This document shows positions 29,192 to 33,935 of a stretch of DNA of 64,000 bases, piece by piece. The stretch lies in the IMG/VR virus record IMGVR_UViG_3300033182_000674, positions 1 to 64,000 of that record; one strand, written 5' to 3'. Every line of letters starts with the position of its first letter. Position 1 is the first letter of the stretch. The translations under genes and the position numbers were made by a program. The notes under the pieces are model-generated. The model was not told the origin of the DNA and did not search any database. It saw only the letters and a list, made by a program, of their open reading frames with translations.

Positions 29192-29538
29192 TGTTTTGTT
29201 CTCCTATTTATTATATGGTGCCTAATTTTATTTATAATAAAGAGGATTCCAGATATCAATGGAATAATTACAATAAACCAAGGGAATTCGCGAACGGCTT
29301 CAATTGATTTATTAGGATCAAATTTTATATCAGGCGTTGGAATAGGTAATGGCTCACCATTTTCATCGTGAGTTTTTACACTATCTATTTCTACATTAGG
29401 ATCTTCAATTTCATCTTTTTGAGTATCATCAAAAAATAATGATGATTCACCTTTTAGCGCTTTACCTACTGGCAAAAAGGATAAAGTATTACATCCAACT
29501 AACGTAATACTTAACATCATAATAAAGATCAGTTTCAT
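29188..29538 (-). CDS. Lipoprotein with C-terminal TM helix (u-spanin-like topology)
   Basis: Lipobox LVGC at residues 13-16; Pro-rich linker; TM WFIVIIPLISGILFII; basic tail. Confidence 0.5.
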   Translation of the reverse strand: MKLIFIMMLSITLVGCNTLSFLPVGKALKGESSLFFDDTQKDEIEDPNVEIDSVKTHDENGEPLPIPTPDIKFDPNKSIEAVREFPWFIVIIPLISGILFIINKIRHHIINRRTKQ

Positions 29539-29539
29539 A

Positions 29540-29986
29540 TCATGCTTTTTGAACTACCATAAAAGATTTAAACATCCATCTTAATTTTCTATGATAGTCA
29601 AGTCTTTCTTCCAGAAAGTTCACTAGTCCAAATTGTTGTGCTTCATCAGCCATATTGCGTGTTTCCAAGATTAAAGCTAATAGCTTATCATTATCTTGAT
29701 TAATACGATCAATCATAACTCTTGAAGCTGGAATAGTTGTTTCATCTTCAATGATGCTTAGTTCACTAAATCTACCAAGTGAACCAGGCGCAAATGAATC
29801 TAATGCACGAATTTGTTCTGCATACTTATCTACAGAATTCCAAACGTCTTCATAAATATCACCAAAGAAATCGTGGAATTCATAAAAATCTGAACCTACA
29901 ACATTCCAATGGTAATAGTGCGTTTTTAGATAGAATGCAAAGGTTGTAGCCAATGATTCTTTCATTTTATCAAGTAACTCTTCCAT
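29540..29986 (-). CDS. dps: Dps/ferritin-like DNA-protection protein
   Basis: HYYHWNVVGSDFYEFHDFF..IYE...D.YAEQIRAL; late promoter at 30018-30025. Confidence 0.92.
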   Translation of the reverse strand: MEELLDKMKESLATTFAFYLKTHYYHWNVVGSDFYEFHDFFGDIYEDVWNSVDKYAEQIRALDSFAPGSLGRFSELSIIEDETTIPASRVMIDRINQDNDKLLALILETRNMADEAQQFGLVNFLEERLDYHRKLRWMFKSFMVVQKA

Positions 29987-30025
29987 TTAAATTTCCTTTC
30001 TCGTTGGAATACATTACTATTTATA

Positions 30026-30283
30026 TCACTTTTGCACGGTGTTAATCATTTCTTCGTACAAAATTTCAACTTCATCCATTTCATTACGAACTTCAGATAA
30101 GTTTTGTTTGTGATAAATGTTTGCAATCTTACGGACATATTTCTTTTCAACATCCAATTCTTCTGAGATGTCATTAATAATATCACGTTGAAGATCTTTT
30201 TCAGAGTCAACTCTTGTCATAGAGTTAGACATTTCAACGACTGCATTATATAGTTTCTTGCGATCTTCAGGACTAGATAGCAT
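30026..30283 (-). CDS. dsbA: T4-like dsDNA-binding protein DsbA
   Basis: VEMSNSMTRVDSEKDL..DI......E...KKYVRKIANIYHKQN. Confidence 0.75.
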   Translation of the reverse strand: MLSSPEDRKKLYNAVVEMSNSMTRVDSEKDLQRDIINDISEELDVEKKYVRKIANIYHKQNLSEVRNEMDEVEILYEEMINTVQK

Positions 30284-30462
30284 TTTTTTCTCCTTTTAAA
30301 GATTGAGGCTTTTGCCGATTGTACGATCTAACTCTTCGAGAGTAACCATATCTTGTTGTTTTTCAAGAACAGTTCTCTTTGGATTTAGATTGAATTTCTT
30401 TTCGAACCAAAAGTTAATAGTATCAAACTGATCTATTAACCATCTAAAAATTTTACGTTTCA

Positions 30463-30837
30463 TTAAAATAATTCTTTTTCAGTTAATACTTTAAATTCAT
30501 ATGATTGTTGATTACACCATTCTTGTGCATACTTCCATTTAGCCTTATTGATATCCCATCGCTTTTGATAATAAGGTTTAATTTCAACTATTATTTTTCT
30601 ATTGTCATATGTTTTAATCACAAAGTCTGGATAATAGTTATGCCACTTTTTATCCTTAGGTGAAACATATGGGATATGTAATTCTTCTGAACTCCATTCA
30701 AGTACTTTAGGACTACGATCACAATATAACATAAATCGTCTTTCCCATAGACTTCTATATGTTATACGATTGATATTACCAGAATATTTTTCTTTATTCT
30801 TTGGTTTATATCTTCCACGAATTGCTGTATTCTTCAT
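30463..30837 (-). CDS. 4: Head completion nuclease gp4 (TnsA-N-like)
   Basis: GRYKPKNKEKY.G....ITYRSLWERRFM.YCD....V.EWSSEE..IPY.SP...HNYYPDF..VEIKP; start refined past the tRNA remnant. Confidence 0.9.
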   Translation of the reverse strand: MKNTAIRGRYKPKNKEKYSGNINRITYRSLWERRFMLYCDRSPKVLEWSSEELHIPYVSPKDKKWHNYYPDFVIKTYDNRKIIVEIKPYYQKRWDINKAKWKYAQEWCNQQSYEFKVLTEKELF

Positions 30838-30841
30838 AATT

Positions 30842-30865
30842 TGGTGGGCCCACAAGGACTTGAAC
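30842..30865 (-). pseudogene. 3' remnant of a split tRNA (T-loop, acceptor 3' strand, ACCA)
   Basis: GTTCAAGTCCTTGTGGGCCCACCA; TGGGCCC pairs with GGGCCTA of the remnant at 31606-31640. Confidence 0.85.
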
Positions 30866-30873
30866 TTAAAAAA

Positions 30874-30950
30874 TGGTGCGCCGTGTCCGATTCGAACGGA
30901 CGACCCCTCCGTTATGAGCGGAACGCTACTGACCACTGAGCTAACGGCGC
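30874..30950 (-). tRNA. tRNA with CAT anticodon, probably Ile2 (lysidine type) rather than Met
   Basis: GCGCCGT/ACGGCGC acceptor, TTCCG-CTCATAA-CGGAG, CCA; C4:G69 and C5:G68 match E. coli TilS determinants. Confidence 0.88.
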
Positions 30951-31561
30951 AATAAATCTTCTATAGTCATATCATCTAACTTGTTTATCAATTTGGAGTC
31001 TATAACTATAAGTGTTTCTGTAAAGTGAGACCATTTTGCTTCATCACGATCCGTTTTGTATCCTTTTACTTCAATATATACATCTTCTTGCGGCAAATAG
31101 AAATCTGGGAAATAAGTTCTTTCGCTGCCATTCCATGTATAAGAGAATCCTTTCGGTTCATTATACCACTTTATATTTTGTTCGTCAAACCATTTAGCAA
31201 CAGTTAATTCCCATTGACCTTTAAGTTTGCAACCGCTATACTCAACGATTTTTACTCTACCACACACATTATTCTTTGTATAAGATTCCGGATGTTTTTT
31301 AACTGCCTTCTGCATTGCTAAAGAATGACAGGCTCGCCTTTCATCATCCCAAGATTGGTTCTTACTCGCTTCAGAAATCTTCTTACGGGTTTCTTCAGAC
31401 ATTTCAGCACCGTATGTATATTGGTTACTACCTTTCTTACCCTTCATTCCATACGAAGGTTTTTTAATCTTCCTGTTTGGATTTGAATGACAGTATACTT
31501 CATGTGCTACATTGCTAGTCTTGGTCTTTGCTTCTCTTCTACAATATTGACAAATAAACAT
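30941..31561 (-). CDS. Free-standing homing-type endonuclease (Zn-finger, NUMOD3-like, PD-(D/E)xK)
   Basis: CxxC..HxxxC N-terminus; MSEETRKKISEA; KGQWE..YFPDFYLP..YIEVKG; GGAGG RBS; stop codon lies inside the tRNA 5' end. Confidence 0.85.
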   Translation of the reverse strand: MFICQYCRREAKTKTSNVAHEVYCHSNPNRKIKKPSYGMKGKKGSNQYTYGAEMSEETRKKISEASKNQSWDDERRACHSLAMQKAVKKHPESYTKNNVCGRVKIVEYSGCKLKGQWELTVAKWFDEQNIKWYNEPKGFSYTWNGSERTYFPDFYLPQEDVYIEVKGYKTDRDEAKWSHFTETLIVIDSKLINKLDDMTIEDLLRR

Positions 31562-31578
31562 ATTAACACCTCCATGTT

Positions 31579-31586
31579 TATTTATA
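31579..31586 (-). promoter_or_regulatory. Late promoter carried by the endonuclease cassette
   Basis: TATAAATA between the tRNA 5' remnant and the endonuclease RBS. Confidence 0.75.
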
Positions 31587-31605
31587 TGCTTATTTATCAT
31601 TTCCA

Positions 31606-31640
31606 GAGTCCACTGCTCTAACCAACTGAGCTATAGGCCC
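31606..31640 (-). pseudogene. 5' remnant of tRNA-Ile2-like gene broken at the anticodon
   Basis: GGGCCTA-TA-GCTC-AGTTGGTTA-GAGC-A-GTGGA-CT-C, then unrelated sequence. Confidence 0.88.
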
Positions 31641-31892
31641 TTAATAGATTCCGTAAACTGATTCTTCTGAAATCAATGCTGCTTGTGAATTATCAACACT
31701 GACTGCTAAAGCATCTCCCCATTTAACCGCAACTTTATCTCCAACTTGTACATCCTTTACATCAGGTCCAATCGCTAAAACAATTCCTGGTTTAGAACCT
31801 GTTTCTGCAGATCCTGTTAATACAATACCAGATTCTGTTGTGGTCTCTGATTTACCTTCTGCTAATAAGATATAGTCTTTTAATGGTTTCAT
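31641..31892 (-). CDS. groES: GroES-type co-chaperonin
   Basis: MKPLKDYILL..ETTTESGIVL...GIVLAIGPDV..V.VGDKV...ISEESVYGI. Confidence 0.88.
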   Translation of the reverse strand: MKPLKDYILLAEGKSETTTESGIVLTGSAETGSKPGIVLAIGPDVKDVQVGDKVAVKWGDALAVSVDNSQAALISEESVYGIY

Positions 31893-32566
31893 AATGTTTC
31901 CTTAAATTGTTCCTTAAATTGGCGTCCCGTAGGACAAAACTTTTTACATTGTTCTATAGATTCTATTATAACAATATTTTTATATTGTGTCAATAGTCTA
32001 TCTAACTTTTTCTTTTGAACTTTTACTGCTTGAGGATTTTTTGGATCTAAAAATAAATCGTAATCTTCAAGATAAAAGTCAGGAAAATAATTGTGTGTTA
32101 CACCTTCTTCATCTATCCAAGGTATAGGATCTGGTCTTACCCACTTAATTTTTAATTCATCTAATCTTTTAGCTAATTCTAATTCCCAAGACGAATCTAA
32201 TAGAATTCCTTTATACTCAACTGTTCCCTTTTTCAATCTTCTATGAGGAGATGCTAATGCTTTTTCTCTTAGAAGTTGTTTTGTCTCTTTAGTGTGCTTT
32301 TTACCTAAAAATGTTCCTGGTTTACCTTTCATTGGTGATTCAGGAACTTCTTTACCATCTAACCTAGCAACGGTATATTGATTTGTTCGGCCAGATTGTC
32401 GTCTGGCTTCATTCATCGCCTCAACATTATTTCTTCCCAAAGCATCAGCATATTCTTTTCTTTTAGGATTTTTATCGCACCATCTAGAATGGTTCGCCAT
32501 CCAGCCGCTTGGTTTATCGGAAATATCAAATTCAGTTTTACAATGTTTGCACTTTCTTATATTCAT
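31889..32566 (-). CDS. Second homing-type endonuclease (Zn-finger, NUMOD3-like, PD-(D)xK)
   Basis: CKHC..H..WC; GKKHTKETKQLLREKAL; DSSWELELAK..YFPDFYL..FLDPKN. Confidence 0.85.
   Translation of the reverse strand: MNIRKCKHCKTEFDISDKPSGWMANHSRWCDKNPKRKEYADALGRNNVEAMNEARRQSGRTNQYTVARLDGKEVPESPMKGKPGTFLGKKHTKETKQLLREKALASPHRRLKKGTVEYKGILLDSSWELELAKRLDELKIKWVRPDPIPWIDEEGVTHNYFPDFYLEDYDLFLDPKNPQAVKVQKKKLDRLLTQYKNIVIIESIEQCKKFCPTGRQFKEQFKETL
31920..31935 (-). pseudogene. Probable decayed tRNA 3' remnant (GTCCTACGGGACGCCA) now read through by the endonuclease ORF
   Basis: Ends GCCA (G discriminator, Arg-like); two nt short of a full T-stem plus acceptor strand. Confidence 0.45.
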
Positions 32567-32585
32567 AATAGTAACCTTTAGTAAT

Positions 32586-32660
32586 TGGCGGGCATACCAG
32601 GATTCGAACCTGGAACGAGGGTTTAGAAGACCCTTGTGATATCCCTTTCACCATATGCCC
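32586..32660 (-). tRNA. tRNA-Arg(TCT)
   Basis: GGGCATA/TATGCCC acceptor, AGGGT-CTTCTAA-ACCCT, CCAGG-TTCGAAT-CCTGG, GCCA. Confidence 0.95.
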
Positions 32661-32670
32661 TTGTTACTAC

Positions 32671-32678
32671 TATTTATA
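32671..32678 (-). promoter_or_regulatory. Late promoter upstream of tRNA-Arg and the endonuclease
   Basis: TATAAATA between the tRNA 5' remnant and the intact tRNA. Confidence 0.75.
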
Positions 32679-32691
32679 TAAACTAAGTTTT

Positions 32692-32719
32692 CTGCTCTAT
32701 CCTACTGAGCTACTGCGAG
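32692..32719 (-). pseudogene. 5' remnant of an Arg-type tRNA
   Basis: CTCGCAG-TA-GCTC-AGTAGGATA-GAGC-AG: complete D-arm with GGA(20), then sequence diverges. Confidence 0.7.
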
Positions 32720-32760
32720 ATTATGATTAATATTATAATACAGAAAATTGTAAATGTAAA

Positions 32761-33381
32761 CTACTTTTTGCCTTTTTTATTCAAAACAACTTCAACATTA
32801 TCTGGTAGTGGTACATGTGAATGACCAGAAGCTGAAGTACTATATAGTACAAATTTTCTATCTTTGAACTCGTTAAACATACCTTTCCAAATAGGTCTCC
32901 AACGAGATGTGAGTCTCTCAGTATTTAAATTATCACGAGAGGATTTCATATATGAATCAGACGAACTGGTAATATCAAATGCAAATATAGAATCAAATCC
33001 ATACATATGAATTTCATCAGCTTTAAGCTTATTCATGATATAATGTGTAGCCATATGACCGCAGTTAAAGTCAGTATAGTTTGGTGCATACTTAGGTAAT
33101 ACAGTATAGAATTCTTTAATTTGATGAGCATGCTTCATGTAAAATGGTGCACGCATTTCCATATACTTCTTAGGTCTAGCTCCAAGTGTCCAATCACCTG
33201 GTACTTCAATAACGCCATCATCAATAGCTTTCATCATTTTAAAATCAACTAGAACAGATGTGTATAATCCTGGAATAGCAAAAGGAGGAATATTACATGC
33301 AACCTTTAATCCTTTCTTTTCACCTTTTAGAAACATTCCCGCTGATTTACCATTTCCAATTAAATGTACAGTCTTAGCCAT
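32761..33381 (-). CDS. Putative glycosyltransferase of the sialyltransferase/Maf-like fold
   Basis: VHLIGNGKS near the N-terminus; GHMATHY...ADEIHMYGFD. Confidence 0.5.
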   Translation of the reverse strand: MAKTVHLIGNGKSAGMFLKGEKKGLKVACNIPPFAIPGLYTSVLVDFKMMKAIDDGVIEVPGDWTLGARPKKYMEMRAPFYMKHAHQIKEFYTVLPKYAPNYTDFNCGHMATHYIMNKLKADEIHMYGFDSIFAFDITSSSDSYMKSSRDNLNTERLTSRWRPIWKGMFNEFKDRKFVLYSTSASGHSHVPLPDNVEVVLNKKGKK

Positions 33382-33386
33382 TTATT

Positions 33387-33935
33387 TTATTCCTTATGTG
33401 TATACCAAATATTATCTGGTCCAATGTTATATCCTAAAATACTTATACCTGACAAATGAGTACTACCAAACTCTTCATCTATTGCCTTTTTAACTTCTGG
33501 CATATCAATATCATGTCCAGATACTAAACCACCTTTTTTAACTTTTGGATACCATGCATGAATATCCTTTTTAACTCCAGCATAACTATGATCAGCGTCA
33601 ATAAATACAAAGTCTAATGAATTATCTTCGATATCATTTGCTGCTAATGCTGTAAAATTTCTAACTATTTTTGCTCTAGGTTTATAATTGTCAGCAAACT
33701 CTAATAAATCTTTATACCAAGGTGCTGGCTCTTTTTCTAATAGTTTTTCTGTAGTAGTGATTCCTTCTGCTTTCCAAATTCTATCATTAAAGAATACATC
33801 TACGCCATATAGTGTTAAATTAGGACAATTTTCAATAAGATGTTTAAATGTTGGTCCACGTAATACACCAAGTTCAGCACCTATTTTATAATCATTATCT
33901 TTTATAATTTTCTCAAGCCATAATTTTCTATTCAC
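33387..33935 (-). CDS. Class I SAM methyltransferase (Methyltransf_24-like)
   Basis: GAELGVLRG, LYGVD, SLDFVFIDADHSY..VKKDI..W..KVKKGG.VSGHD. Confidence 0.88.
   Translation of the reverse strand: MNRKLWLEKIIKDNDYKIGAELGVLRGPTFKHLIENCPNLTLYGVDVFFNDRIWKAEGITTTEKLLEKEPAPWYKDLLEFADNYKPRAKIVRNFTALAANDIEDNSLDFVFIDADHSYAGVKKDIHAWYPKVKKGGLVSGHDIDMPEVKKAIDEEFGSTHLSGISILGYNIGPDNIWYTHKE

Follow-up and report, generated by a model that had tools for sequence, protein, structure and literature searches.

Gene organization of the locus

We analyzed a stretch of 64,000 nucleotides of a T4-like phage (positions 1 to 64,000 of IMG/VR record IMGVR_UViG_3300033182_000674, hereafter the window), in which all of the features described below lie on the minus strand. 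A GroES-like ORF (Pfam Cpn10, 1.8e-13) stops at 31643-31641 and is directly followed by a 35-nt 5' tRNA fragment (31640-31606), which comprises the acceptor 5' strand, the D arm, the anticodon-stem 5' strand, and then C32 U33 C34. Two promoter-like motifs of the T4 late type follow, GATAAATA at 31598-31591 and TATAAATA at 31586-31579, as well as a GGAGG at 31573-31569. The next ORF (31561-30941) encodes a nuclease of 206 aa, a start that is supported over the 219-aa alternative by the alignment of homologs. An intact tRNA(CAU) gene was detected with ARAGORN at 30950-30874 and matched the Rfam tRNA family over its full length (55.7 bits). The TAG stop codon of the nuclease ORF (30943-30941) corresponds to positions 8-10 of this tRNA. 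After an 8-nt spacer, TTTTTTAA (30873-30866), lies a 24-nt 3' tRNA fragment (30865-30842; G53, T loop, T-stem 3' strand, acceptor 3' strand, and ACCA), and a gp4-like ORF starts at 30837. The initial annotation, which had proposed a tRNA gene split at its anticodon by a nuclease gene and a substitute tRNA, was correct to the base.

The two fragments, which flank a 740-bp insert, derive from one tRNA(CAU) gene. Indeed, the 35-nt fragment is identical to the 5' half of intact 77-nt tRNA(CAT) genes in Acinetobacter phage Maestro and in eleven other IMG/VR contigs, all of which continue with ATAA, so the lost anticodon was CAT. The acceptor strands of the two fragments pair 7/7, whereas the 3' strand of the intact tRNA pairs only 4/7 with the old 5' strand. 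The fragments total 59 nt, so 18 nt are missing, as had been noted initially. A search for a 5' tRNA half followed by ATAAATA returned only two occurrences on both strands of the 64 kb, one here and one at a second cassette described below.

The predicted nuclease

The nuclease ORF belongs to a large, unnamed family, with 228 word-sharing relatives and 348 clusters at E<=1e-30 in the representative library. An alignment of 33 homologs revealed several invariant features: an N-terminal CxxC...H...C zinc finger, a PSYGMxGKKG-NQ stretch with a weak NUMOD3 hit, and the catalytic residues E118, D153 (in YFPDFY), E164, and K166 (in EVKG), in the order expected of a PD-(D/E)xK nuclease. A profile of the family matched T7 endonuclease I (PDB 1m0d) with an E value of 5.9e-5 over 60 residues, with the catalytic residues aligned. 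The AlphaFold model had a pLDDT of 84.6, with a strand-rich core above 90 over residues 105-200, and its best fold match was the catalytic domain of the homing endonuclease I-Bth0305I (PDB 3r3p). It should be noted that both matches are weak, the latter having a Foldseek E value of 1.2e-3 and a target TM of 0.59, and that T7 endonuclease I is a junction resolvase without the zinc-finger/NUMOD3-like N-terminal part. PHROGs assigns the family to 'endonuclease' (4.8e-31), but Pfam hits were all below the curated thresholds (PF05367, Phage_endo_I, 17.0 bits against a cut-off of 29.1; DUF7487, 19.6 against 27). We therefore refer to this domain as T7-endonuclease-I-like and do not assign it to the Pfam family. 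No GIY-YIG hit was found in Pfam or PHROGs.

Recurrence of the architecture in other phages

We examined 22 loci with full-length homologs of the nuclease from IMG/VR, ENA, Logan, and GenBank, on unrelated phage contigs. About 20 of these have a 5' tRNA fragment within about 70 nt upstream of the start codon, broken near position 34; where the sequence is clearest, it ends with ...ACTC, i.e., at C34. In several, the fragment is also trimmed at its 5' side by a neighboring tRNA. Most have an ATAAATA motif between the fragment and the ORF, and 16 have a tRNA(CAT) at or overlapping the stop codon, which in several of these is U8-A9-G10 of the tRNA. A covariance model of tRNA(CAU) was first used to detect half-tRNAs, but its matches were forced over the whole model and truncation points could not be read; local alignment and curated junctions were used instead.

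Separate 3' remnants were found in the window and in five of the homologous loci (L089, L093, L101, L130, and L132), and each pairs 7/7 with its own upstream 5' remnant. Locus L131 also keeps the old 3' end, fused to a largely deleted spare tRNA, and it fits once the first G is restored. In L016, the cassette tRNA is fused to the 3' end of the old tRNA, while in L085 and L092 the cassette tRNA has the resident acceptor stem. These are the products expected from crossing-over inside the tRNA. While the 5' break stays near position 34, the 3' junctions vary, from about position 44 in L130 to about 57 in L093, or are absent, so the right-hand boundary is not fixed by a precise mechanism or has been eroded.

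Cultured phages provided an empty/filled pair. Salmonella phage moki has an intact tRNA(CAT) exactly where Escherichia phage PhaxI has the cassette. The flanks are 93% and 98% identical, but in PhaxI 43 nt of the middle of the tRNA are replaced by 808 bp that hold a start-codon hairpin, the nuclease gene, a different tRNA(CAT) overlapping its stop, and about 65 further nt. What is left of the old tRNA is 27-29 nt at the 5' side and 5-6 nt at the 3' side. The distribution of the nuclease is sporadic: only 38 of 50,697 phage records carry a homolog, and only 6 of 327 Kuttervirus-like records cover the filled allele. Likewise, only 2 of 762 Tequatrovirus-like records cover the filled allele of phage F25, in which a homolog sits upstream of the T4-type tRNA-Arg, in the slot occupied by segB in T4.

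For the locus of the window itself, no uninterrupted allele was found among the relatives examined. The 64 IMG/VR loci with gp4 relatives (at most 77% identity) have neither GroES nor tRNA(CAT) next to gp4, and five JGI metagenome loci with GroES relatives (at most 61% identity) lie next to tRNA clusters but have no tRNA(CAT) after GroES; none keeps the synteny. Exact searches for the 3' remnant and for the new tRNA found only the contig of the window.

A second cassette in the window

The window holds a second cassette (32719-31889). It starts with another 35-nt 5' tRNA remnant (32719-32685), which ends at T34 and is consistent with a tRNA-Arg(UCU) target, followed by TATAAATA (32678-32671), an intact tRNA-Arg(UCU) gene detected with ARAGORN (32660-32586; Rfam, 63.8 bits), and a nuclease ORF of 225 aa (32566-31889), the stop of which overlaps the GroES start. 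This second nuclease is 41% identical to the first over the catalytic core. Of its 80 IMG/VR relatives, 41 have tRNA-Arg(tct) 11-70 nt upstream, usually preceded by the same half-tRNA plus TATAAATA. In five loci (L141, L149, L152, L155, and L190), a 3' remnant directly after the nuclease stop pairs 7/7 with the 5' remnant about 800 nt away. In a tree of 81 proteins, the two types form separate 100/100-supported sister clades, and their tRNA partners cluster on the tree (0 of 500 shuffles as low). Of note, the gene order differs, with remnant, promoter, tRNA, nuclease, and remnant in the Arg(UCU) type, and remnant, promoter, nuclease, tRNA, and remnant in the CAU type.

Identity of the resident and carried tRNAs

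Old-type tRNAs are about 82% identical over their full length to E. coli CAT tRNAs annotated by PGAP as tRNA-Ile. The best E. coli hits of the new tRNA are also PGAP tRNA-Ile genes with CAT anticodons, but the match is weak (E=0.05). As noted in the initial annotation, C4 and C5 are present in both tRNAs; the pairs C4-G69 and C5-G68 are probably TilS determinants in E. coli, and we refer to both tRNAs as tRNA-Ile2-like. T4-like phages with tRNAs have all been reported to carry such a CAU tRNA-Ile (PMC1524935), which makes it a well-conserved target.

Within a cassette, the remnant and the spare tRNA are only 60-71% identical in the 5' half. Remnants are nearer to the common phage allele (81%) than spare tRNAs are (69%), although this difference is modest. 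Spare tRNAs track their nucleases more closely than the remnants do: those of the window and L130 are 97% identical in the 5' half, against 89% for the remnants. It is important to note that the anticodon loop, CTCATAA, is identical in the old and new tRNAs, so any immunity of the spare copy must rest on the stems or the D arm.

Discussion

Taken together, the locus is most likely a homing-endonuclease cassette inserted in the anticodon loop of the resident tRNA-Ile2-like (CAU) gene of the phage, which restores its disrupted target with a spare copy instead of by splicing. By analogy with SegB and intron-encoded enzymes, we infer that in a mixed infection the nuclease cuts an intact tRNA(CAU) gene of a cassette-free phage near the anticodon, and that the break is repaired from the cassette-bearing genome, with the conserved 5' half of the tRNA as the left homology arm and the T-loop/acceptor end (or flanking genes) as the right arm. 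The target would be left split, and so immune, while the tRNA function would be supplied by the carried, sequence-divergent copy. Resistance of the spare tRNA to cleavage, late transcription, and damping of nuclease expression by RNase P processing at the 5' end of the tRNA are likewise inferred. The core of the initial interpretation, a mobile nuclease cassette inside a tRNA gene that brings a divergent substitute tRNA, is supported by comparative evidence, although its description of the target as essential is overstated, as the T4 tRNA region is dispensable (PMC2330249).

The constant 5' junction does not necessarily mark the cut site. It could be inherited from one ancestral insertion, or kept because its terminal CUC forms the 5' arm of an RBS-sequestering hairpin with the promoter motif in the loop, the regulatory design described for T4 homing endonucleases (PMC2330249). 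Such a hairpin is strong in L016, L093, and F25, and a start-codon hairpin occurs in PhaxI, but the leader in the window has no significant hairpin (z = -0.03).

The closest known system is T4 SegB, a free-standing GIY-YIG homing endonuclease in the tRNA cluster that cuts tRNA genes of relatives lacking it and co-converts neighboring tRNA genes (PMC2330249, PMC13096335). SegB also has a NUMOD3 motif, and the tRNA-Arg gene begins 5 nt after the segB stop in the T4 record; maturation of tRNA-Arg has been proposed to cut the segB mRNA next to its stop codon (PMC2330249). However, the catalytic domains are unrelated, SegB recognizes the T-loop motif and cuts at tRNA 3' ends, and no split target gene flanks segB, whereas here the cassette lies inside the target, with both halves left behind and a dedicated spare copy. 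The contrast with SegB-type co-conversion drawn in the initial annotation is one of architecture and not necessarily of mechanism. As with intron- and intein-encoded homing endonucleases such as I-TevI, or I-Ssp6803I in a tRNA-fMet group I intron, the element lies inside its own target site, and some cassettes have the T4-style late promoter plus an RBS-sequestering hairpin, but there is no ribozyme and no splicing, and function is restored by a second gene copy. We found no description of this architecture or of DUF7487 in the full texts searched, which covered few subscription journals.

Alternatively, this could be an ordinary free-standing endonuclease of the SegB type that cuts elsewhere in tRNA genes, for example in the T loop, or nearby, with the neighboring tRNA as a co-converted passenger and the remnants as debris of illegitimate recombination with no bearing on specificity. 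The position of SegB upstream of tRNA-Arg in T4, its cutting at the conserved T-loop motif and its co-conversion of tRNA genes, the variable 3' junctions, and the F25 homolog at the segB position are in line with this view. It nevertheless seems unlikely, as fragments broken at or near position 34 in about 20 diverged cassettes, and in a second clade with a different target tRNA, are hard to obtain from random debris. In addition, remnants always belong to the same tRNA type as the carried tRNA, and T4 segB has no upstream tRNA remnant.

Even less likely is that the cassette is mainly a device for swapping tRNA alleles to the benefit of the phage, supplying a variant tRNA that escapes a host anticodon nuclease or another tRNA-targeting defense, with the nuclease serving recombination or amplification rather than selfish spread. 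SegB-driven amplification of a tRNA gene does let T6 escape Septu (PMC13096335), and cassette tRNAs differ from the common phage allele in the stems and D arm. However, the anticodon loop is unchanged, nothing here links the cassette to a defense system, and sporadic distribution and target disruption are the usual marks of selfish homing, with which this reading is in any case compatible.

An assembly chimera of a metagenomic contig is very improbable, as the same architecture occurs in independent assemblies from JGI, ENA, and Logan and in sequenced isolates, namely PhaxI and F25 (tRNA remnant, nuclease, and overlapping tRNA) and AM101 (nuclease within a tRNA cluster). Finally, although the interruption lies where bacterial tRNA introns sit and the nuclease is of the PD-(D/E)xK kind, a group I intron that encodes its endonuclease (as in cyanobacterial tRNA-fMet with I-Ssp6803I) or a split tRNA joined at the RNA level is refuted by the missing 18 nt, without which the halves cannot make a tRNA. 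The complete second tRNA within the insert, the absence of 3' remnants in several cassettes, and the lack of any intron family at E<=1 in 29500-33500 also speak against it.

Homing endonucleases are known in two arrangements, either inside a self-splicing intron or intein or free-standing between genes. This cassette would be a third one, as it sits inside its target and compensates with a carried duplicate. It is plausible, and somewhat more likely than not, that such cassettes represent a large, undescribed class of phage homing elements that carry a spare, presumably immune, copy of the target tRNA. This class would have radiated onto at least two targets, tRNA-Ile2(CAU) and tRNA-Arg(UCU), and probably more, and would be a main driver of the turnover, hybridization, and pseudogenization of tRNA genes in T4-like, Kuttervirus-like, and jumbo phages. 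The finding also points to an uncharacterized nuclease family, the natural targets of which, if the inferred mechanism holds, are short, conserved tRNA-gene sequences. The arrangement would explain orphan tRNA halves and tRNA pseudogenes in phage genomes, why phage tRNA clusters are so mosaic, and how variant tRNA alleles move between unrelated phages, which bears on phage escape from tRNA-targeting defenses.

A second cassette, in a tRNA broken at T34

A second cassette of the same kind was identified on the minus strand at 31889-32719. It comprises a 35-nt 5' half of a tRNA broken at T34, TATAAATA, an intact tRNA-Arg(UCU), and then a nuclease of the sister clade. This arrangement is widespread in IMG/VR, with paired remnants. 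In the window, however, the second nuclease has no 3' tRNA remnant, and its extended C-terminus overlaps the start of the GroES-like gene (ATGA), which sits between the two cassettes (31641-31892). The original right junction seems to have been lost. Of note, GroES relatives elsewhere lie beside tRNA clusters.

Other disrupted tRNA genes

In Escherichia phage vB_Eco_F25 (locus L220, 1596-1652), the tRNA-Thr gene has an internal deletion of about 15 nt that removes the anticodon and the 3' side of the anticodon arm, compared with phage teqsoen. This deletion looks like a repair scar at the position where these cassettes break tRNA genes. In loci L017 (669-705) and L018 (4618-4654), the tRNA after the nuclease stop is itself cut off after ...GAACTT (about position 34) and is followed by unrelated sequence, which may represent a second hit on a cassette tRNA. 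In locus L085 (~745-800), the 5' remnant upstream of the nuclease has an extra stretch of about 24 nt inside its D loop.

Signals around the nuclease start and stop codons

Strong hairpins (z from -3.5 to -5.9) that sequester the ribosome-binding site or the start codon were found in four loci, L016 (3956-4006), L093 (1464-1509), L220 (1755-1809), and L224 (858-906). In L016, L093, and L220, the ATAAATA-like motif lies in the loop, and the 5' arm starts in the last bases of the tRNA remnant. This is the T4-style control of homing-endonuclease translation.

In several cassettes (those of the window, L016, L085, L087, L089, and phage PhaxI), the nuclease stop codon is the conserved U8-A9-G10 of the tRNA (within 30941-30950 in the window). 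RNase P processing at the tRNA 5' end would then cut the mRNA just before its stop codon, as proposed for segB and tRNA-Arg. It should be noted that two predictions in this region, at 30463-30936 and 30876-30950 (+), are artefacts: a GTG-started ORF extends the gp4-like gene upstream through the tRNA, and an Rfam 'Plastid-ycf2' hit (31.9 bits, below its threshold of 65.7) is the antisense strand of the tRNA.

Proteins sharing only the N-terminal module

The proteins encoded at L019 (4001-4627) and L020 (3995-4630) share only the N-terminal zinc-finger/NUMOD3-like part (39-41% identity over residues 4-66), while their C-terminal domain is different, with a weak DUF559 hit in L020. They also lie directly upstream of a tRNA(CAT). 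The DNA-binding module seems to have been shuffled between nuclease domains.
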